A DNA stretch of 64,000 nt. Origin: Diplonema japonicum. Taxonomy: Eukaryota; Protista; Euglenozoa: Diplonemea. Within the stretch, counting starts at the first letter, position 1; every line of letters starts with the position of its first letter. A program made the position numbers and the translations under genes. Of this stretch, positions 1 to 42,184 are shown piece by piece. The stretch is from NCBI GenBank assembly GCA_964019335.1, contig OZ025760.1, positions 1-64,000 of the forward strand, read 5' to 3'. A model generated the notes under the pieces. That model was given only the letters and a program-made list of their open reading frames with translations. It made no database searches and was not told the origin of the DNA.

Positions 1-88
1 GGGTTTGCGGGTTTGCGGGTTTGCGGGTTTGCGGGTTTGCGGGTTTGCGGGTTTGCGGGTTTGCGGGTTTGCGGGTTTGCGGGTTTGC
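1..88. repeat. (GGGTTTGC)n octamer tandem array, 11 copies, open at the window edge; reads (GCAAACCC)n on the minus (sense) strand
   Basis: Perfect 8-nt repeat from base 1 to 88. The last base is shared with the TAG stop of the AlkB ORF. Confidence 0.97.
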
Positions 89-1200
89 TAGGGGGGTATG
101 TGGGTGAGCTCGGGGCCAACCGCACGCAGGGTGATCGACACCCTGACACCAGTGGACACCCCTGACGGGATGTGGTGTGTCCACTGGTGTCTAGCTTCGC
201 CTTCCAACAGTGCCCATGAGAAGGGGGGCACCAGGTACCTCGCTACCCTGTCCCCCTTCCTCATGACCATTGTGGTCTCAGCCCCGTACGACAAGACTAG
301 GACGACCGGTCCCAGTCTTGCGTCGTCCTTGTGGGCGGCAATCCCACAACCAGGTCTGTACTTATTCACAAGTACCTGGTTGGGGACCACCTTGAGCCCT
401 GCGGCGGCGGCCACCTCCCTCACCCACCCCTTTGCCTCCCCTGGGATGCCGGTGGTGGGGCGCACCTCGGCGTCCGTCCCCTCCCACCGGTGCCCATGCT
501 GGAGCGTCTCCCTCCCCGTGTTCCCTGACAGGGCCTCCCACTTCCCGGACAGCAGAGCTTCTGGGAAGGCGGGGGCAGCACCTGTCTTCAACCCGGGGGG
601 GTGCTCACCATCTTTCAGTATCCACCCTTCCCCCTTTTTCTTCTTTTTTTTTTCCTCTTCAACTATGGCAGGGTCGGCTGCGGAGGTCGGGCTTGCGGCA
701 GGGGCGGCTGCGGCGGTCTCAGTTGCGGCAGGAGCGGCTGCAGCGTTCAAGGCGGCAGGGGCGGCTGCGGCGGTCTCAGTTGCGGCAGGGGCGGCTGCAG
801 CGTTCAAGGCGGCAGGGGCGGCTGCGGCGATCGTGGTTGTGTCGGTCGTGGCTGCGGCAGGGGCGGCTGCGGCGTTTGGGGCGGCAGGGTCGGCTGCGGC
901 GTTCAGTGCGGCTGGGGCTGCTGCAGCAGTCGTGCTTGCGGCCGGGGCGGCCGTGGCTGTAGCAGGGGCTGCTGCTCCCTTGGTTGTGGCGGTCAAAACC
1001 GCGGTCTCTACTTGTGATTTTTTTTTTTTATTATTTTTTTTTTCTAAAGGGGGGTGGGGGGATCTAGGGGGTGGGGATTCATACTGCCCAACCAGATTGC
1101 CTGGTTGGGTGGGTCTCGGCGCCGTGCACTGCGGGCTGCGGGCTTGCTCCTGCGGGCTGCGGCTGCGGTCACCTCCTCCTGCGAGTCGTCTTGGATCCAT
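88..1200 (-). CDS. AlkB-family 2OG-Fe(II) dioxygenase with an Ala/Thr/Pro-rich repetitive N-terminal region
   Basis: C-terminal PNQVLVNKY..G.GIAAHKD...LSYG...LEGEARHQWTHHI...RVSITLR contains the HxD...H iron triad and the RxSxTxR 2OG-binding motif. The first ATG (1200) follows an A-run. A 66-bp internal duplication lies at ~690-830. Confidence 0.88.
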   Translation of the reverse strand: MDPRRLAGGGDRSRSPQEQARSPQCTAPRPTQPGNLVGQYESPPPRSPHPPLEKKNNKKKKSQVETAVLTATTKGAAAPATATAAPAASTTAAAAPAALNAAADPAAPNAAAAPAAATTDTTTIAAAAPAALNAAAAPAATETAAAAPAALNAAAAPAATETAAAAPAASPTSAADPAIVEEEKKKKKKGEGWILKDGEHPPGLKTGAAPAFPEALLSGKWEALSGNTGRETLQHGHRWEGTDAEVRPTTGIPGEAKGWVREVAAAAGLKVVPNQVLVNKYRPGCGIAAHKDDARLGPVVLVLSYGAETTMVMRKGDRVARYLVPPFSWALLEGEARHQWTHHIPSGVSTGVRVSITLRAVGPELTHIPP

Positions 1201-1372
1201 TTTTTTTTTTTTTTTTTGTTTTATAGTGTGTGTTGGGGGGGAGGGGATCCTTTCGTTGAGCGGCGGGCAGGCCGACGGGCAAAACAACCCCCCCGGACGA
1301 CGGCGACGACGGACGACGGACGCAGCGGCAAACCCAGGCAGAGGCGGCAGGCACCAGCAGAACACGAACGAC

Positions 1373-1410
1373 CAATAAAGTACAGAAACTGTAGCTTTAG
1401 AATCGTTGGT
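1373..1410 (-). other. Genomic spliced-leader exon copy (38 nt), followed by GT
   Basis: Minus strand reads ACCAACGATTCTAAAGCTACAGTTTCTGTACTTTATTG|GT. This matches the euglenozoan SL 3' consensus CAGTTTCTGTACTwTATTG and the diplonemid AACCAACGATT.. 5' end (recalled from memory). Identical to 4027-4064. Confidence 0.93.
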
Positions 1411-1455
1411 ACTGGAGCTTTAGAATCGTTGGAACTGGAGCTTTAGAATCGTTGG
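1411..1455 (-). repeat. Two tandem partial SL copies (CCAACGATTCTAAAGCTCCAGT[T]) upstream of the full SL
   Basis: 22-nt and 23-nt units corresponding to the SL 5' two-thirds; both carry the same A>C change. Confidence 0.9.
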
Positions 1456-1626
1456 CTCTATCCCATCCACGACCAGTCGCTCGAATTTCTTTTCGGCTAA
1501 CCCTTTTGGGTCATATTTCGATGGTTCAAGTGATGTTGATGATGATGATGTTACTGATGATATCGATTTTGATGATGATGAGGGGAGGGGATTGGCGCGT
1601 GAGTGGGGGTCATCGTTCACTTCATG

Positions 1627-3847
1627 TCACTTCGCGCACGCTCGGCAAACACACACCATACAATCCTGCTGGAGGCACTTTACACCTTGTCTCTTCTTCG
1701 TGAGGGCCTCCCCACAAACACTGCATCCCGCGTCCCAGTGATGGAACACATTGTTGAAAACGTGTGAGCTCCCGGTCGCTTTGCAGATTCTCCAATCGCA
1801 ATCTTCGTCCTCGTCCTCTCCCTCTGGTTCTCGTTCCATTTCCTCGTCTTCTTCTGTTGGTGGGGGTCCCAAGTCGTCGTCATCGTCCGTAAAGTCAAAA
1901 GATTGTTCTTTTCCTTGGGCTATTTTCTGTGCGAAGGTCTGTCCAAGGGGGGCCGGCCCGCTCTTAACCTGCTTCATCAGTTCCCCGATCTGTTTGGACA
2001 TCATGTCCATTTGCGTCCCCATTTTCTGGACTTCCCTCTCCAGTCGGGCGTTTTCCTGCCTTAGCCTCTCTACCTCCGCTGTAGGTTTGACCTCCGGTGT
2101 CGGTCCTCCCGCGATCTTTTTAAGGGCGCGCTCGATGGCGGTGAGCCTGTCTTCCACTGCAGAGGTTTGTTGTTTGTTCTCTGCTGTCTTTGTCCGATTG
2201 CTTTCCGTGTCTGGCGGGGTCGCTTGTGCTGGGCCGTGGTCCCCCCTGTGTCGGGCCATTCTTGAGAGCGTTCAGGAACGACTTTCCCGGTGTTGCCGCC
2301 CTGCCCCACACCTGGGTTGTCCTCGGCTTACCGTTCGGTGGTGGTCCCTCATCCTGAGCAATCCTGCAATGCAGAACGTCCCCCTGCGGTCCCGTAATAC
2401 GGAGGAATGTCGTTGGCGGTTGCGGTCCTCGTATCAGCCAGCACTTCGTGTTGCCCGCCCAGCTGCCGCGCACAGGTACACCATTCCATCCTATGGCTCG
2501 CAGGATGTGTCGCACCTGCACTTCCCCCGCCTCACGGTAGAGCCCCGAGAGTCTCCACATCGGCTCCCCGTGTTGTCCGCTCTTCCTCGTCTCCTCTCCG
2601 AGTATTCGGCTAAGCAGCGGAATCTTCCCTTCTTCTGTGGTTCTGACACCTAGTCTCCCGTCGGACTCCCTCAGGGCCAGGCCGTGTCCCTCGCCGAAGC
2701 TCAGCGCCTGTTCCAGCGTGGTCTCTTTCGGCAGCCATGCAACTGGCTGCGGCTTGCCATCCCTTGGTTTGATGAAGACCCCTTTGCTTCCGGACCCCTT
2801 TACCATGTTGGCGAGCTCGACCTTCGGCAACGTCACCAGTGCGTCTACGTGGGGGTTCGGGCTGCTCGACACCTTGGACACTGCTATGATCGACTCGAAC
2901 TTGAGGACTTCTGTCAGCCACTTCCTTGGCGACGTTGCCGCCGTCTCCCACAGTGAAGAAGGTACATATGCCTTCGGTATGATTACCGCTGCCCTGCTGT
3001 AGTGCTCCCCTAACTTTACGTCCCGTGTGTCCTCCCTTGTGACGCGTTCTATTTTTCCGGATAGTAATAGCACGAACATCCGTCTGTTGGAGTATGCCTT
3101 CCCATCTTGCAGAACGATGTCGTGCTTGTGTCTTCCTTCACCGTCCTTCTTCAGCAATAAGGCCTTGTTCCCCGTCCACTCCTGTCCTGCTGCCTCCTCC
3201 ACGCACTTTTCACTGGCCATCGCTACCCCGTCCTTGCCCTCGAGTAACTCCTCCCACGTTACGAAAGGGACGTTGTACTGGCCGCTTTCTAGCTTCCACG
3301 CCCTTTCCTCCTTCTTCGTCATCCTTGCTTTTCGCTGTGGTTTGCCGACCACCGTCCACGCCTTCTTCTGTCCATCCGCTACGGGGACCCCTACTTTTGG
3401 GGGGGTGAAGTCCGTAGCTGTCACCCCTTTCAGTGCCGACGGTGTCCTCGGCTCGATGACGCCGTAGAAGGACTTCCCGTCGAAGGCGATGTGGACCGGC
3501 TTCTGTCCCTTCTTCGGTTTCCCAGGCACCGGGTAGACGATGAAGGTGTCCCCTGAGAAGGTGGCGACGTTGATGTCCATCCGCGTGGCCCTAGCCACTG
3601 CCAGCACACAGACCAGGTCTGCGCTCGTCCCGTCCTTCGAGTGGGCGACACAGTACTCGTCGTAGTCTGTGCCTTCCTCAAGGAGCTTCGTGTACTCCTT
3701 GTCGTTGCCCCGCAGCTCCTGCACCATGAGGCGCCGCACCTCATGTCCCTTCTTTCCCGTCTTCGACCCCGCCACCGCGTACAGCCCTCCGGCTCCTCCC
3801 TCCAGCCCCAGGCCGTACCCGCGTAACCCCGCTCGCAGTCTCTCCAT
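1627..3847 (-). CDS. LINE ORF1: degenerate OTU-like domain + gag-like ORF1 domain + coiled coil + Cys/His zinc finger; split by one frameshift near 2245
   Basis: N-terminal H.VR..MV..L...Y.EY....KDG...AVA...DINV...VHIAFDG..FY follows the OTU pattern but lacks the catalytic Cys/His. ORFs 2120-3910 and 1627-2259 join by a 1-nt change at a G6 run (2241-2246), which may be a sequencing error. Confidence 0.65.
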
Positions 3848-4026
3848 ACTGCTCGTCCTCTGCTCTGCTTCCTTTTTTTTTTTTTTTTTTTTACTTCTTG
3901 TCAACTTCAATGTCTTCTTTTACCCTCTTTTAGCTCTCTTTTCTGCGATCTGCTTTCTCAACTTCTTTCAATTTTCTTTCTTTACAAACCGTATTACCTA
4001 TTGACTTTATTGGCACGGTCGGACAC

Positions 4027-4064
4027 CAATAAAGTACAGAAACTGTAGCTTTAGAATCGTTGGT
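4027..4064 (-). other. Genomic spliced-leader exon copy (38 nt), followed by GT
   Basis: Identical to 1373-1410; located only ~190 bp past the stop codon of the upstream host gene. Confidence 0.93.
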
Positions 4065-4255: not shown

Positions 4256-7200
4256 TCATGAAGCAATCATGTCATCTGGAAACGCAACATCATTATCCTG
4301 CCCACCCATCTCCACTCCATCGTCACCGTACTCCTGTTGGTGTCGCGTGTAGGATCCCTCACATACCAGTAGCCCCATCTGCGACGCGAGGTTCATCGCG
4401 CTACCCTTCGACCTCACCTTCCACCACAGGCAACCAAACACAAGCACCAAGACTCCCAGCACACCAGCCACAGCCGCCAAAACCACCAGCATGACATTGC
4501 CACCACTCCCGCTGGGGGCAGGCGTAGGCACTACCGTACCGACACCTGCTGGCTCAGTGGTCACCGGTGGTACAAGGGTAGGTGCTGCCTTGTCTTCAAC
4601 TAAGGTGATAGTGAGTGTAGATGAATTACCCTCTGGCTCGAGAGCGGGCACACTTGTTGGCACCGCAGTGCTTCCAGCCGGAAGTTGGGTAGTTCCTGGT
4701 TCTAGAGTGGGCGCATTAGTAGGAACTGCACTGCTCCCTGGTACAAGGGTAGCTGGTGCTGCCGTGTCTACAACTAAAGTGATTGTGGGCGTAGATGAAT
4801 TACCCTCTGGTCCGCGAGTGGGCACACTTGTTGTTGGCACCGCAGTGGCCGGAAGTTGGGTTGCTGGTACTACAGTGTCTATTACTACGCAAGCATCTCT
4901 CTCGTTCCAGTAGCAGACCCGGTTTGCATTACACTTTGCCTCGCTAGTCGCAGTGCACTTTTCAGCACAGCCGACAGTGTCCTCCCAGCTGCATGCGGAA
5001 TCTTTCTCACAGGTAGTCTTCTTCTGGTAGGTGCAGGGTTTCTCCTCACATGTCTGACTGATGCTGTACCACACGCACCCATCAGGGTCATTAATGCAGC
5101 TCTGCTCAATGGAATGTACGCACCTTCTGCCAACGCAGCCTGTGCCATCTGTCGACAGCTTACATTCAGCATCGCTGGTGCACTCGTTAACTGAGAGAGC
5201 ACTGCACACAACGCGTGGCTTCTCTTGGCACAGGTGTTGTGAAGCGTTCCAACTGCAGCCGTCTTTTATGCATGCAACCTGGTCTGTACAGTGCTGCATG
5301 CACGGAGAGGATGCGCACAACAGCTTTGACTCGTCCCACACGCAGTTGGAGTCGGTGTTGCAGCTTTTTTTCACTGAGTAAAGTGCACACGGTTGGTGCC
5401 CGCTTGCGTTTCGCGCAATAAAAATCCCGAACTTCGTGTTTGGACTGCAAATACCGTCGAGTAGGTTCGGCAGTGTGCCGAGTTGAATGTTTTCGGAATG
5501 ATCGTCTATCGGGGTAGACACGACGGGCTTCAAAGCATCTAATGCTTCGGTGTCAACATCCGTGCTTGTACTGGTCCTCCTGATAACTATTCCGAACACC
5601 TTCACCTGTACCTGCGAAAGTCTACCAAGCGCGACTCCTAAAGGAACAGAGTTCCCATCAACGATGCTCCCGTCTGCAACGATGACAAGCACCCTCTGCC
5701 TTCCGTCAGCAGGCGATGCCTTGAACATCTCCACGGCCAACTCAAGCCCCTTCTCAAGAAAGGTCCCACCACCGTAGAAGTTGTCCTCCTGCCAGTCGAT
5801 GTCAGAGCTCAGCTCTTGAAGGCTACCAGTAAGACTTCCTGAAGAACCGACACCAGCAGGAGTGACCAGAGCACCTGCCGCGTTACCCACACTTGAGAAC
5901 TGCACGACCCCCACACGCACTTTCTCAGTGCCGCTCCTCGAGGATTTCCCAACACTCCCAATCTCTCCGCTCAAAGGAAGGCCAGCCACCCAACTTCTAA
6001 TCATCTCCATCACAGCCTCAAAGCCGTTCGGGTGGCGTCCGAATTGCATCGTCATCGACAGTGAACCGTCAACAAGGAGTACGAGGTCCAGTGTTGGGCA
6101 CAACCCGTACTCTTGAGCTGTGCAGAAGCCCTTGCTGTTCCAGAAGCAGTCTCCATCTCTTCCGCAGCTGCACATATCGAGCATACTGCACTCTTTCTTG
6201 ACGCACTTGTTATTTTCATACACGCACGAGAAGAAGCTGTCGCATTTCAGTTTGTCACTGTTCATCGTCGCACACTGCGTCATGGCGCACTGCCCGGGAC
6301 TTATCGAAATGTCCCAGTGGCAATCCGAGTCTTTGTAACAAGAAGCTTCAGAGGACTGGGTACACGGCTTCAGAACGCATTCGCTCCCCTCCCAATCGCA
6401 TTGTAAATCACTTTCACACGTTGCCTGGTCACCGTGGGAGCACAGCACCCAACAGGAAGGGCTTTCAGTACCGTTCACCTTCTTCCATTGACAGCTATTC
6501 ACTGTGTCCGCAACGCAGCTGGACTCTTCGCAGTGAGCCATGCAAGAAGAATCCTCGCACACCAAGGCCACGCTGCTCCATATGCAGCCTGGGTCGCTAG
6601 TGCATCCTGTCCGGAGGAGGTGCTGCGAGCACGGCTCATGCATCCCATCCTGGAAAGCAGGTATGAGGAGCTGGCCCCACATGTTCGGGTCGCAGATCCC
6701 GTTTAGGACCTTATCAGGCATCTCGTCGATTGGTATATTTATGAAGTGCTCGTCGTGCGGGTCGGAGGTGATCGGCTTCAGGATAAGTTCGGCATCGTCG
6801 TCGAGTTTGGTGCGTGCTGTTGTTCTCCTCAACACCACACCGAAGATCCTCACACCCTCAGCCAAGAGCACCGCCCTTTGTGGCACAGAGGAAGCATCGT
6901 CATTGATGGGGCCGTCTGTCACGATGATGAGCACCTTCTGCCTCGGGGGGGAGTTCTGGAACATGGCACCAGCCCAGTTAAGACCAGTGCTGATCGTGGT
7001 GAGCCCCTGCATGAAATTCGCCTCGTGCCAGTCAATGTCGTCCTGCAGTTCAGTGAGGTCACCGGTCAGGCTGCCCGAGGAGCCCACGCCGACTGGGGTT
7101 CTCACCGCCTCTGGGACTGGACCAGAGAACTGGATGATGCCCATTCTGAGCCCGCCGCTTGAAGCAGTCGAAGCCCTGCCGACTGTGTGGTCTTCGCCCG

Positions 7201-8239
7201 TAAGGGGAAGGGTGCTTACCCAATTCCTCATCATCTCCATTAGGGCGTAGAAACCGTTCGGGTGACGCCCGAAGGACAGCCCCATCGAGCCAGAACCGTC
7301 AAGAAGCATCACCAGGTCTAGCACGGGGCACTGCTCGTACTTCCTCCCCACGCACCTCGGGACGGAGGGGCGCACGTCCCAGTGACACCTGTCGTCTGCA
7401 CGGCACTTGCAACTGTCGAACTGGCTGCATTCCTTCTTCACACACTTCGTCTGAGTCGCATTCCACATGCACTCATCCTCAGCGTTGCAATCAACGATAT
7501 CCTTCACCCTGCAGCGCTCCTCCTTGCACATGACATCTGGCGTGCTCACGTCATATTGGCAGCCGGGATTCTTCAAGCATTCCTTCTCATTGGGGTACAA
7601 CACACAAGGAGCAATGACGCAGGTCGTACCACCAGCCAAGAAGCAGAACGGGTCGGCTTCGCACATAGCTCCTCCGATGTAGTCGCACTTCTTAGTCCCA
7701 CACATGCCACGCACAAGGTCTACAGTACCACCGCAAGCAGTCGTCGCAGCAGCCACGTCCAAAGTGGTCCCGAAGTTCCATGTGAGGCTCCTCTTGCCGT
7801 TGTCGTTCGACTTAGTAGTAAACTCGATGCTGTCCATAACCTCAGCAAACTTGTCGCTTGTCAACCCAGACACCGCCAGAGAACCACCCTGTACGTCCAC
7901 GGTAACACCCGCAGCACTGCAAGCACCGCAAGTAAGGGAATCTTTTCCACGCACGTATCCGTCGCCGATGCGGACGAAAAAAGAATCTAGCGAAGCACAC
8001 GCGCAGCTGGGGTTACACTTGGTCCCAGGGAACGGCTTAACAGGCACCAGCACCTCGTAGGTGGCAGAAGCGCTAGAAATGTCCGAGTAGACAAGCCACT
8101 CGCAGCCAGTGTCCATTGTACAATTCACTTCCGTGGTGTGCTGGCAAGGGACGGGCGTGCAAAGAGCTATGGGAACACACAAGGCTGCCAGCGCTAGCAC
8201 TGCCACCACGCGGTGCATCTTTAGCGCAGGTCTTTTCAT
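4256..8239 (-). CDS. Type I membrane protein with two vWA domains, Cys-rich repeats and a mucin-like stalk
   Basis: Signal peptide; two LDLVxLxDGSxS MIDAS motifs; many CxW/CxxD repeats; duplicated Thr/Pro stalk (~4570-4870); C-terminal TM segment. Confidence 0.9.
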   Translation of the reverse strand: MKRPALKMHRVVAVLALAALCVPIALCTPVPCQHTTEVNCTMDTGCEWLVYSDISSASATYEVLVPVKPFPGTKCNPSCACASLDSFFVRIGDGYVRGKDSLTCGACSAAGVTVDVQGGSLAVSGLTSDKFAEVMDSIEFTTKSNDNGKRSLTWNFGTTLDVAAATTACGGTVDLVRGMCGTKKCDYIGGAMCEADPFCFLAGGTTCVIAPCVLYPNEKECLKNPGCQYDVSTPDVMCKEERCRVKDIVDCNAEDECMWNATQTKCVKKECSQFDSCKCRADDRCHWDVRPSVPRCVGRKYEQCPVLDLVMLLDGSGSMGLSFGRHPNGFYALMEMMRNWVSTLPLTGEDHTVGRASTASSGGLRMGIIQFSGPVPEAVRTPVGVGSSGSLTGDLTELQDDIDWHEANFMQGLTTISTGLNWAGAMFQNSPPRQKVLIIVTDGPINDDASSVPQRAVLLAEGVRIFGVVLRRTTARTKLDDDAELILKPITSDPHDEHFINIPIDEMPDKVLNGICDPNMWGQLLIPAFQDGMHEPCSQHLLRTGCTSDPGCIWSSVALVCEDSSCMAHCEESSCVADTVNSCQWKKVNGTESPSCWVLCSHGDQATCESDLQCDWEGSECVLKPCTQSSEASCYKDSDCHWDISISPGQCAMTQCATMNSDKLKCDSFFSCVYENNKCVKKECSMLDMCSCGRDGDCFWNSKGFCTAQEYGLCPTLDLVLLVDGSLSMTMQFGRHPNGFEAVMEMIRSWVAGLPLSGEIGSVGKSSRSGTEKVRVGVVQFSSVGNAAGALVTPAGVGSSGSLTGSLQELSSDIDWQEDNFYGGGTFLEKGLELAVEMFKASPADGRQRVLVIVADGSIVDGNSVPLGVALGRLSQVQVKVFGIVIRRTSTSTDVDTEALDALKPVVSTPIDDHSENIQLGTLPNLLDGICSPNTKFGIFIARNASGHQPCALYSVKKSCNTDSNCVWDESKLLCASSPCMQHCTDQVACIKDGCSWNASQHLCQEKPRVVCSALSVNECTSDAECKLSTDGTGCVGRRCVHSIEQSCINDPDGCVWYSISQTCEEKPCTYQKKTTCEKDSACSWEDTVGCAEKCTATSEAKCNANRVCYWNERDACVVIDTVVPATQLPATAVPTTSVPTRGPEGNSSTPTITLVVDTAAPATLVPGSSAVPTNAPTLEPGTTQLPAGSTAVPTSVPALEPEGNSSTLTITLVEDKAAPTLVPPVTTEPAGVGTVVPTPAPSGSGGNVMLVVLAAVAGVLGVLVLVFGCLWWKVRSKGSAMNLASQMGLLVCEGSYTRHQQEYGDDGVEMGGQDNDVAFPDDMIAS

Positions 8240-8770: not shown

Positions 8771-9002
8771 GGAAGCAAATAAACAAAAAAAAAAAAAACG
8801 CGCGACAACAAAAAAAAGGGGTTTTTTGATAAACCTAACGGCATACAAAAAAAAAACCCATTTATTTCCCTTAGCCAAACCGTTAATCCCCCCTTTTTTG
8901 GGGGATAAAAAAAAGAACTGTACAGCCTACAAAAGGAGAACAAAAAAAAACACGGCCACTTCACGGGGGGGGGGGGGGGGGGGGGGGGGGGCGAAGGGAC
9001 AA

Positions 9003-12000
9003 CTAATCACTATCTATCGCGTCCCGCTCAGCTTGCTCTTCGATGTCGGCACCGTCCACGTGTGGAAAGGAAGACATGGGTATGTCTCGTTCCTGCGCCG
9101 CAAGCCTGCTGTACTTAGTTTCCATCATTCTCTTCTTCCGGTAAGTGAGACATAACACCATAAAGAGGAGGATCAAGATGCACGTGAAGATAATACCGGC
9201 AAGGACCATCTGCCGGGTGTGCATAGTGGTGTGCTGTGCATACCTTGTTTGACCCGATGCAGTCTCGTGTGCCGCCTTCTTTTGTAGGCTTCATGTTATT
9301 GTCGTCTACGCACACTACGCCCTGCTTCAACTGCCAGAGCTGTGTCTGGACACTGTCCGACGTGCACGCCCCCCACAGCATCTCAAAGTCGCCTGCCGTA
9401 CACGACCGCTTGCACTCCTTTACAGTCGGAGTCCTCTCGCCAAGACACGACGCATTCTTGTGCCACGTGACCTGCGCCTGCTGCGACTCCAAATCGCATT
9501 CCCCCACCTCTGCAAAGAACATAGCATCCGTGCACTTCGGGCAAGCAAAGGCAGTTGTCATCTATACAAAAATTGTGAGCCTTCAACACCAAACCATACC
9601 TCAAAGTAGTAGCTGCAAGACTCCTCCCTGATATACTTCATTTCGGGCGACAGCGTTGTCACGGAAGGGTCGCACGTCAGGTCAATGTGCGAGACTCTAG
9701 GGTACGGGCTCACTTTCTCGTTGTTTCTGTAGTGGCACTTCGAGCCGTCAGAAAAGGTGATGTTGATGCCAGACGCGGACACCTCGTAGAAGGGCACATC
9801 GCCCATAGAGTACGCGAGGTCCTGGTTGAGTCTCTGACATGCGTATGCCTGCAGGTGGTTCGTGCTTTTTATTTTCATTCTCTGTCAAACATACACGCTT
9901 CCCAGAGCTGCACAGTTCCTTCTCGTTGGCATCGTCATTGACAATCTCGCAGAGTTTCAAGAAGTACCTGGAGGTTAAAAAAAGGGGGGGGAATTGCACG
10001 AGAAAGACAACCACACACCTCTGGATGCTGTAAAGATCATTCGACGTCTGGTTGTTTATATCTAGGTCTGTAGGGCCCATCCGCCTGATGTGGTCCAGGT
10101 CGACAAGGGGTCCAAACAATTTGTTGCCGATCTGCGTGTGCTCGGTGTCTTATCTTGTAAGGCATATACCGGTCTGATGTCGAACGAAAGTCCCGTAGAT
10201 GAATCTTCGAGCTCGCATGTTGCCAAGCAAGCACTCTGGTCAGCGTTCACAACGGCGGGTGCGCACACTTTGCACGATATCTGCGGTGTGGTGGTGCAAA
10301 AAAAAAAAGGGAGGACACACCATGCCCTCGCTGTGTGTGGCACTGCCTGCTGCACAAGGCAAACATGTGGACTGAGCTTCTTTGTCTTGATACTGGCCCT
10401 TCGGGCACGCAATAGGAACAGGCTCAGACGCAGGGCATTTCTTGCCCTTGGGGCACTCTAAGCAACTCGTGCTCGCGCCCCCCTCCACTCCGTACAAGGA
10501 GAGAGACGTGATGTACAAATTGCTTTCGTGCACCGAACCAGAGCAGGACTTTTCAAAAATCCACTTCAGTTTGTACTCCTGACCAGGGGCAAACACGACA
10601 TCATCGCTACCTTCAAGTTCAGAGAATGACCCCAGCGACTTCTGTGCGAGTTCGTTCCTCGCGAGGTCGAGTGAGAACTCGTACTTGTTATTGATGACGA
10701 AGGTGCCTTTGCTGCACGAAGTAGCCCCGCCGAAGTAGTACTTGAAGTCGATGTGACCTACGGTCACCCTGTGCGGTGAGGAGTGAAGTGAGGAGCACGA
10801 CAACATACATTGTGACGGTGAGGCTTAACTCTACGTTGACACTGTTCCCGTGCCCCATGCCACTCGACAAGGTTGTCATCTCCTGACCGTTCAGCATAGT
10901 CTTTTGGATCTCCCATGCGGTGTCGCCGTATGAGTCCTTCTCTCTGCATGAGGATGTCGCATCTTGGGTGCACAAGTTCGTGACCTTCATTAAGCTGTCA
11001 TCTTGCGTGAGGCCCATACTCAGAGGGACACCTTCCGCTGTCGCAAAGTCCTCGAAACTGGAAAAAGAAAAATGATGCAATAATGCACTATTTAAAAACA
11101 TACACAAGCTTCGGCACTGCAAACATCCCGCCTGTGCAAGTCTGGCACTCGTCACCTTTTCTGTACTGCCCCCTTGGGCAGTGTGTGCACTTCCCCGACT
11201 GATCCCTGAAGTACCCTTCAAGACAAACGCTGCAGTCCTGATACTCTTCGGGTTTGAAAGACTGTTCGAAAAAAAATACACGCCAATATATAAACAAAGG
11301 GACATACGATGCAACCGCTCTGTTGCCAAGTAGCCTTTCTCTTGAAGCCTCCATCACGCGCCTCGCAAGCATCGTACTTTGGGAAAGTGCACTCAGCCAA
11401 TGGCTCACATTTCTCTGACCCGGGTGCTGACATCTCTGTGTCAGAGCAGTCGATGCATGACGTGGCAGGGTCGTTGAAGCCTCTCTTAGTGCCAACAGGA
11501 CAAATGCTGCAACTGCCGCTCCCAGCAGTGGAAGATGCGTACCCTAACGGGCATGGTGAACACGCCGTGACAGACTTTTCCTGCCCAGCGACAGTGATGC
11601 TCTTGATGAACGCCCTATCGGCCCCAACAGGGTTGGATCTTGATTTGGTGTACGAGAACCGCACGATGTGCGAGCCTTTGTTCAAATAGAACTCGGCAGT
11701 GTCCCACGTGAAATCGAGGCCTGTCGTCTTGGTGCCCCACTGCAAGTGCCCATCGACGTAGATCTGCATGGACGCCGTGTCCCTCTCGCACTCGATCCTG
11801 TGCTGCACGGTTACCTTGGCAAAGGCACCAGTGTTTACTATAAGAACAAGGCTGCTCTCCGCGTCTGGTGACAGGCTGTTGTCGCCGGACGTGAGCACGT
11901 TGTGCTCAACTGTCCAAGGGTTGCAGCTCCTACTATGGCAGTATGTAGCAATGTCCTTTGGTAGTGTGCCGTTGAACCCTTCGTAGGTGATGGCCTCGCT

Positions 12001-42111: not shown

Positions 42112-42184
42112 TGGTCGTGACAGGGCTCGAACCTGGGACCGTTGGCTTATTGGACCAATGCTCTACCGACTGAGCTACACGACC
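42112..42184 (-). tRNA. tRNA-Ile(AAT)
   Basis: GGTCGTG TAGCTCAGTCGGTAGAGC A TTGGT CC-AAT-AA GCCAA CGGTC CCAGGTTCGAGCCCTG TCACGACC A, with A and B boxes and a T7 terminator. Confidence 0.93.

Follow-up and report, generated by a model that had tools for sequence, protein, structure and literature searches.

The contig end described here, positions 1-4064 of a 64,000-nucleotide stretch of Diplonema japonicum DNA that we call the window, is probably a chromosome end at which a broken long interspersed nuclear element (LINE) has been capped by a truncated copy of a telomere-associated element. The latter is led by a spliced leader (SL) and its full-length form combines AlkB, OTU, reverse transcriptase (RT) and putative endonuclease regions. 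The window corresponds to C113:1-64000 of a genome of 132 contigs (62.5 Mb), and its base 1 is base 1 of contig C113, which makes it a contig or chromosome end. Toward the contig end, the minus strand carries in turn a host gene, an SL-led LINE copy, an SL stutter plus a full SL, the first 1.3 kb of the AlkB element and a terminal array of 8-mers. An initial annotation, made from the letters of the window alone, had reported the SL copies, partial SLs, an AlkB open reading frame (ORF) and (GCAAACCC)n on the minus strand of this region, and every one of these features is present where it had been placed. Its interpretation of the AlkB unit and of the relationship between the two units has to be revised.

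The nature of the AlkB unit becomes apparent from a full-length, 9.3-kb copy of the element at the left end of contig C9 (locus L029). This copy consists of an SL, a 5' untranslated region (UTR), one long ORF, a T-rich 3' UTR of about 0.7 kb, an A-run and the array, which extends to the contig end. The open frame comprises 2866 codons (about 2800 residues from the first ATG), in which Pfam profiles locate AlkB (PF13532, residues 228-361, E 3.6e-13), OTU (residues 1004-1109, E 5.7e-12, 46.7 bits, above the cut-off) and RVT_1 (residues 1509-1712, E 3e-16). The DGNC motif of the OTU domain is kept (DGNCMFHAL in translation). The solved structures closest to the RT are those of R2 proteins (E 8e-8), and its closest database relatives include D. 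papillatum proteins that were automatically named SLACS (44% identity). Reading the translation by eye, we found zinc-finger-like motifs and, C-terminal to the RT, the motifs CHDPRC...H...C, RHD and PAD...D.V.VHP, which resemble the CCHC and PD-D/ExK motifs. The element has the LINE-type RT that characterizes the R2/CRE group, and it is found in one orientation in a repeated target, with the array both upstream of the SLs and downstream of the 3' ends. Insertion inside the SL exon, a trait of the CRE clade, was not seen: the elements begin with SL nucleotides 2-39 and are not flanked by the halves of an SL gene, and the SL RNA genes that we examined (L037 and L038) are intact tandem units.

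The unit in the window belongs to a second subfamily, about 85% identical to the L029 type in the AlkB region. A third subfamily is arranged in tandem at C24:6263-38556, with a repeat length of about 10.66 kb and a longest open frame of 3005 residues. In another locus (L033, C38:570000-579999), five array units in reversed orientation, GGGTTTGC on the sense strand, lie inside the endonuclease-coding region of an element copy at 9944-9983.

A comparison of AlkB-domain ends shows how the window's copy came to be so short. An anchor near the end of the domain was searched in the loci fetched from the genome and gave 26 matches, three of which are accounted for by the window itself and by one locus that is present twice; the other 23 are distinct copies. 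Every one of these extends beyond the point at which the window's copy ends: 19 continue with ...CCCCAGGAAGACCC... into the long ORF, one begins at AGGAAGACCC, and three of a third subfamily continue differently. Among the 26 domain ends, the junction ...CCCCCC/TA/GCAAACCC occurs in the window only. The window's TAG stop codon exists because this junction creates it, and the array is attached at this site because the intact sequence there resembles the repeat unit. About eight matches of 90-97% identity were considered as further copies of the short unit and rejected, as their alignments reach the array by repeat likeness and all of these loci continue. A non-autonomous family would share its 5' and 3' boundaries at several sites, whereas the 3' boundary of the window's AlkB unit recurs at none of the other domain ends in the fetched loci. 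The uniqueness of the AlkB-array junction among these ends means that there is no amplified RT-less family, and the RT-less AlkB passenger cassette proposed in the initial annotation gives way to an N-terminal domain of a 2866-codon frame that also encodes OTU and RT. The AlkB unit is a one-off truncated copy that comprises the first 1.3 kb of a 9.3-kb element.

Truncations of this kind are also seen at other contig ends. We compared 16 fetched end-region loci, oriented with the end to the right, 11 of which reach the first or last base of their contig. The elements always point outward and form head-to-tail stacks with short arrays between them. Their 3' ends are cut at element positions 1897, 2600, 2964, 4207, 6210 and 6266 with the array attached directly, and the attached array begins at GCAAACCC, or at CCC where A bases precede. 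The right end of contig C100 (L005, C100:355781-361195) carries, at 4560-5415 of the locus, a second LINE copy that is cut inside ORF2. Its cap is an AlkB element truncated at both the 5' and the 3' end, without an SL, joined through a 7-nucleotide filler, after which the array runs to the contig end.

Genome-wide, the Pfam AlkB profile matches at 98 places, of which about 85 are of the element type and about eight are stronger-scoring internal host paralogues. The element-type matches lie almost only at contig ends with their sense strand running outward. Of the 40 matches within 20 kb of a contig start, 39 lie on the minus strand; the 13 matches near the ends of contigs whose length is known all lie on the plus strand. 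At least 11 copies of the AlkB element retain open frames of more than 2000 residues.

The unit beneath the cap is the 5' part of an ordinary LINE of the apurinic/apyrimidinic endonuclease (APE) type, the ORF2 of which was read as far as the endonuclease, with the RT part lying beyond the loci compared. The genome contains five near-full copies with 96-99% identity, plus fragments. Copies L002-L006 and L008 read ...GAGCCAA/ACCCGGG..., whereas the window reads ...GAGCCAA/CGATTC..., and intact copies continue past the position of 1452 as ...DGIEP/NPGPIV... into the endonuclease ORF. The ORF2 of L003 matches Exo_endo_phos (PF03372, E 2.6e-11), so that the family of this unit shows the two marks of an APE-type LINE, an Exo_endo_phos ORF2 and multiple dispersed copies. 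In the window, the remainder of ORF2 from the APE endonuclease onward is absent, and no LINE sequence is found distal to the AlkB unit. The two elements are therefore not nested, contrary to what had been supposed: the LINE breaks off at 1452 without a remainder, and the AlkB unit caps it and runs into the terminal array and the contig end.

The intact ORF1 of this LINE has 781 residues (L003) and combines a degenerate OTU-like region at its N-terminus with a coiled coil and a C-terminus rich in Cys. The split ORF1 seen in the window is the result of a 62-nucleotide deletion near 2194/2195, which divides the reading frame in two, and the frame ending in DGIEP, initially listed as a separate item, is the start of ORF2 and reads on in intact copies. 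ORF1 and ORF2 share one frame with a single TGA between them (window 1627-1629, minus strand; L003 3976-3978, plus strand), which suggests stop-codon readthrough. For the proposed OTU-like character of ORF1, the match is weak (E 0.008, 17.1 bits, below the Pfam cut-off of 23.3), the region is 25% identical to the OTU domain of the AlkB element, a Gly replaces the catalytic Cys, and the His is absent. The N-terminus of ORF1 would at best be a degenerate OTU-like fold.

Only the copies in the window and in L002 start with a full SL. Six of the eight LINE copies (L003, L004, L005, L006, L008 and L010) begin at SL nucleotide 24 (TTTCTG...), five of these six directly behind T-rich flanks, and T-run target sites and microhomology may be involved at the 5' junction of this LINE. 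A sister LINE family is present at more than 35 places (for example L039-L041, at C85:352300, C69:70000 and C52:486000) and has a 747-residue ORF1 of like build. It has the SL and about 25 nucleotides of the 5' UTR in common with the LINE of the window (about 50 nucleotides in all, roughly 90% identity).

The SL copies connect the two units. The 3' half of the SL is found at exactly two places in the 64 kb (4027-4045 and 1373-1391), where none would be expected, and the 5' half at four (4047-4063, 1439-1455, 1416-1432 and 1393-1409), again with none expected. They make up two identical 38-nucleotide copies with a GT behind each (4064-4027 and 1410-1373), and two partial copies of 22 nucleotides (1455-1434 and 1432-1411) that have an A>C change in common. 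With the adjacent full SL, the partial copies form a tandem stutter of 23 nucleotides; different stutters are found at the 5' ends of other element copies. Behind the full SLs, the window continues with GTGTCCGACC... and GTCGTTCGTG..., two different sequences, neither of which matches an SL RNA gene. True SL RNA genes consist of the 39-nucleotide SL, GTACCCAATC..., a stem-loop and a T-run, and are arranged in tandem units of about 350 bp. The SLs of the window have no such conserved intron, stem-loop, T-run or tandem units, which bears out the view of the initial annotation that both units are retroelement copies and not SL RNA genes. A search of Rfam gave no family that matches the SL RNA. 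For comparison we used a listed euglenozoan SL, which we take to be that of Diplonema. The SL found here differs from it at two positions (PMC3795323).

Throughout the genome, 187 exact 37-nucleotide SLs are dispersed, 48 of them with the full AA start. The flanks upstream of the SLs of AlkB elements are diverse (unique sequence, coding sequence of other elements, array, or partial SLs), the 3' end of these SLs lies always precisely at the exon boundary, and in more than 20 other copies the 5' UTR of the AlkB element stands without exception directly behind an SL. Since the SL ends at the exact exon boundary and is preceded by many unrelated flanks, we conclude that the transposition intermediates were SL-led RNAs. 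These data show a genomic SL on copies from three retroelement families, with many different flanks, and support SL-led RNA intermediates for these families; the earlier proposal that the SL is part of the DNA copy is upheld, and both units are multi-copy with unrelated flanks. In the copy at L017 a full SL is followed by SL nucleotides 24-39, a pattern expected from re-splicing at the internal AG of the SL. In kinetoplastids, the cap 4 structure contains modified bases adjacent to the cap; it is not known for diplonemids. The absence of the first A from the SL copies would be expected on general grounds if cap-adjacent modified bases stop the RT. A different kind of copy was seen on the minus strand of L025 (C107:1-10000) near 8922, where a lone SL together with SL RNA intron sequence, apparently a retroposed SL RNA, follows a C/T run.

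The array is the third component of these ends. A six-unit pattern of the 8-mer matches the genome 5030 times. On the plus strand, the array reads GGGTTTGC at contig starts and GCAAACCC at contig ends; it ends most of the sampled contigs, and a TTAGGG array is absent from the genome. At the terminus, the strand with the 3' end is C/A-rich, the reverse of canonical telomeres, in which the G-rich strand runs 5' to 3' toward the end. The C-rich strand follows the sense 3' end of the element; array and elements are inverted relative to the chromosome body. We considered and rejected the idea that the array is a nanopore miscall of TTAGGG, as the source is likely PacBio HiFi, the array is regular, and short interstitial tracts show it too. 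A TERT-like gene (L047, C41:532474-535800) with an open frame of about 1086 residues matches Telomerase_RBD at 24-28 bits, near the cut-off, as well as RVT_1, and a telomerase may exist despite the odd terminal array. The array may be made by a telomerase that synthesizes the C/A-rich strand, or it may be built by the RT of the element. As a third alternative, the chromosomal 3' end may prime second-strand synthesis on free cDNA and so add new units, a route with which the junctions GCAA/ACCAACG and the CCAA of the window are compatible.

The following sequence of events would account for the window. The RNA of the element would be SL-led and end in array repeats, and its cDNA would be primed from the G-rich strand of the array, as in target-primed reverse transcription by an R2-like endonuclease. 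A chromosome that had broken or eroded within the LINE would then have been joined to the SL side of one such copy through the CCAA microhomology, with the SL stutter at the join resembling the product of template switching. The distal part of the AlkB copy would have been lost later, and the array re-added at a repeat-like site (CCC-AGGAAGA-CCC), fortuitously making a TAG just behind the AlkB domain.

Several observations weigh against this account. The order of addition, erosion and re-capping is inferred from comparing ends, and the 3' truncations could instead stem from cDNA priming at internal sites of the RNA. The array is predicted to be the physical terminus from the ends of assembly contigs, and its inverted polarity misfits simple telomerase-made telomeres, despite the TERT-like gene. 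In the public runs, which offer short unitigs only, no unitig bridges the junction at 1452; unitigs from these runs confirm the intact LINE copies and the abundance of the SL. The endonuclease was seen by its motifs only, as no profile matched the region behind the RT. Both SLs of the window are followed by GT, as in the SL RNA gene, and the main forms of both families are alike in this, a feature that the account does not cover. Finally, the shifted SL junctions within the 5' UTR mostly lack a preceding AG. These variable junctions do not prove alternative trans-splicing, as only one of the five lies behind an AG; deletions or template switching fit better.

A more far-reaching version, which we consider rather unlikely, joins all of these features into one undescribed chromosome-end system, in which an inverted 8-mer array and outward SL-led elements would be added 5' end first and AlkB would act on the SL. 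The chromosomal 3' end would pair via AACC/CCAA with the 3' end of the cDNA, that is, the complement of the SL, and copying would proceed out to the array tail. AlkB would strip methylation from the hypermethylated cap-proximal nucleotides of the SL so that the RT can copy the leader.

It is also conceivable, but clearly unlikely, that the junction formed without any reverse transcription, when break-induced replication or microhomology joining repaired a chromosome broken in the LINE by copying an SL-AlkB-array block from another chromosome end. The junction does have a microhomology of 4 nucleotides, subtelomeric copies are 96-99% identical to each other, and break-induced replication has been documented at MoTeR ends (PMC7367193). 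However, neither the A>C stutter nor the 3' junction of the window occurs in any other fetched copy, so that no donor is visible among the fetched copies, which are a part of the approximately 85 in the genome.

We regard as highly improbable that the AlkB unit is a distinct, RT-less non-autonomous element (SL-UTR-AlkB-TAG-array tail) that inserted into the LINE and was mobilized in trans. In favour of this reading, the unit begins with an SL, its AlkB ORF is intact and closed by a stop codon, and a repeat tail follows; the RT of the element might accept any RNA that terminates in array repeats, and MoTeR2 is a precedent for a non-autonomous partner (PMC7367193). Against this stand the 3' junction, which is unique in the fetched loci while all the other copies read into the long ORF, the missing LINE sequence behind the AlkB unit, and the many positions at which other ends are cut, which make the cut in the window an instance of a general process. 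An assembly artefact, namely a chimeric join of cDNA-like or repeat reads at the contig end, can be almost entirely dismissed: the region is made of repeats and no public unitig spans 1452, but dozens of contig ends show this architecture with junctions of their own, the junction of the window is less than 3 kb from unique sequence, and HiFi reads underlie the assembly, provided that the genome is that published for D. japonicum YPF1604 (62.30 Mb, PacBio HiFi, 118 chromosomal pseudomolecules; PMC13598402).

The AlkB domain carried by the capping element is well preserved. In the window it scores 54.2 bits against a curated cut-off of 31.2, the motif HxD...H...RxSxTxR is intact, and HKD, THH and RVSITLR are kept in all copies compared. 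Between two subfamilies, the ratio of nonsynonymous to synonymous divergence (dN/dS) is about 0.2 at a dS of about 0.24, which indicates that AlkB is maintained by selection within the lineage of the element. The nearest solved structure is ALKBH8, followed by the S. pombe AlkB homologue, ALKBH6, ALKBH3 and E. coli AlkB. No host AlkB paralogue locus is found among the DNA matches to the AlkB unit of the window, and hence the genome contains no near-identical, SL-less host gene as its parent, a possibility that the initial annotation had wished to see checked.

In word-based protein searches, neither the AlkB domain alone nor the AlkB region of the full protein retrieved anything. An exhaustive phmmer search gave best relatives of 35-48% identity, mostly small, among them three long D. 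papillatum proteins. Cluster mates of 2635 and 1964 residues from that species have the same AlkB-OTU-RT order, which makes the architecture older than the separation of the two Diplonema species. The public annotation of four D. papillatum proteins (P0140, P0138, P0271 and P0272) reads tRNA (carboxymethyluridine(34)-5-O)-methyltransferase or SLACS 132 kDa protein; they are mis-annotated copies of the AlkB(-OTU-RT) retroelement family. We infer that AlkB is a conserved, predicted enzymatic domain of the element. Its role would most likely be to remove base methylation from the element's own RNA or cDNA template for reverse transcription.

The features of the contig end are collected in Table 1, together with the SL RNA genes used for comparison. 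Further inside the window, a tRNA gene lies at 42112-42184 on the minus strand (Rfam RF00005, 59.6 bits); it is the sole Rfam match at gathering score across the window, L037 and L038.

Table 1. Features at the C113 contig end (window coordinates unless a contig is named).
Feature	Position	Strand	Remarks
Terminal 8-mer array, (GCAAACCC)x11	1..88	-	Directly behind TAG, to contig base 1
Truncated ORF of telomere-associated element, 370 aa	88..1200	-	ATG 1200-1198; TAG 90-88
AlkB domain, Pfam 2OG-FeII_Oxy_2 (PF13532)	124-528	-	E 2.9e-14
5' UTR of telomere-associated element, start GTCGTTCGTG...	1201..1372	-	Common to >20 other copies
Genomic SL copy 2 (38 of 39 nt), 5' end of AlkB element copy	1373..1410	-	
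Two 22-nt partial SLs (SL nt 3-24), one base after each	1411..1455	-	
CCAA microhomology junction, common to LINE ORF2 and SL 5' end	1452..1455	-	
First ~57 codons of LINE ORF2, in frame behind ORF1 TGA	1456..1626	-	
LINE ORF1	1627..3847	-	ATG 3847-3845; TGA 1629-1627; broken by 62-nt deletion
LINE 5' UTR, start GTGTCCGACCG...	3848..4026	-	
Genomic SL copy 1 (38 of 39 nt), 5' end of LINE copy	4027..4064	-	
Last ordinary host ORF, 1327 aa, upstream of LINE	4256..8239	-	Context
SL RNA genes L037 and L038	C15:778700-779900; C59:512000-513161	-	At most ~1.5 kb from right contig ends

The system appears to be a variant of the telomere-associated LINEs with a restriction-like endonuclease that are known in fungi, with several unusual features. 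The claim of the initial annotation that nothing equivalent has been described was overstated, given the published MoTeR, FoTeR and orchid Ty3/Gypsy AlkB elements. MoTeR1 and MoTeR2 of Magnaporthe oryzae and the FoTeRs of Fusarium encode an RT, as the diplonemid element does, and a restriction-like endonuclease related to SLACS/CRE, for which that element has candidate motifs. Like it, they reside within terminal repeat arrays in one fixed orientation and form head-to-tail stacks with short repeat tracts between them. MoTeRs also share the terminal truncations, to which repeats are added de novo from small seed homologies (PMC7367193), and the C-rich repeat strand behind the sense 3' end of the element. 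However, the arrangement is a mirror image: in MoTeR the 5' ends are distal and suffer the terminal truncations with seeded repeat addition (PMC7367193), whereas in the diplonemid element the 3' ends are outermost and truncated. Furthermore, the diplonemid element is about twice as long, adds AlkB and OTU, has DNA copies that begin with the SL, and lies in an 8-mer array whose polarity is inverted. Oriented LINE stacks that make up or invade chromosome ends are also known from HeT-A, TART and TAHRE of Drosophila and from TRAS and SART of Bombyx. Unlike the diplonemid element, those of Drosophila attach by their 3' ends with the 5' ends outward, and the endonuclease of TRAS and SART is of the APE type and their tails are poly(A).

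Within Euglenozoa, a parallel exists with SLACS, CZAR and CRE1-2 of trypanosomatids, which are restriction-like-endonuclease LINEs, as the diplonemid element would be, and are likewise tied to the SL. These insert inside SL RNA genes, within the SL exon. In the diplonemid element, in contrast, almost the whole SL is the element's own 5' end, and instead of lying in SL RNA genes, the copies follow unrelated flanks or sit within the terminal 8-mer array. Slamovits and Keeling reportedly described in 2008 relict spliced leaders in retroposed dinoflagellate genes. There, as here (compare L017), a genomic SL can only derive from a trans-spliced RNA copied into DNA. Unlike in dinoflagellates, the SL-bearing diplonemid copies that we saw are retrotransposon families and not ordinary host genes, and the commoner extras are 5' partial SLs, the stutter, which the re-splicing model does not predict.

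A selfish, RNA-based replicator with its own AlkB-type 2-oxoglutarate- and Fe(II)-dependent dioxygenase has precedents in the published AlkB domain of orchid Ty3/Gypsy elements (PMC9289625) and in the replicases of plant RNA viruses, the latter having AlkB together with OTU, as in the diplonemid element. The present case differs from both in being a protist element without long terminal repeats (non-LTR), in having an AlkB that is nearest to the ALKBH8/ALKBH6 type among solved structures, and in fusing AlkB, OTU, RT and an endonuclease motif in one ORF. In the literature we found no description of an AlkB domain in a non-LTR element, and none of such a dioxygenase under purifying selection. 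The same is true, for non-LTR elements, of an almost complete SL fixed at the 5' end of the DNA copies and of a mirror-image arrangement within an 8-mer array of inverted polarity at the chromosome ends.

In summary, these elements provide a sequence-level handle on the maintenance of chromosome ends in abundant but poorly studied marine protists, and an example of trans-spliced RNAs being reverse-transcribed into the genome in Euglenozoa. They also offer a natural AlkB-RT fusion with a testable substrate, and correct the public annotation of D. papillatum homologues that are labelled as a tRNA methyltransferase or a SLACS protein.

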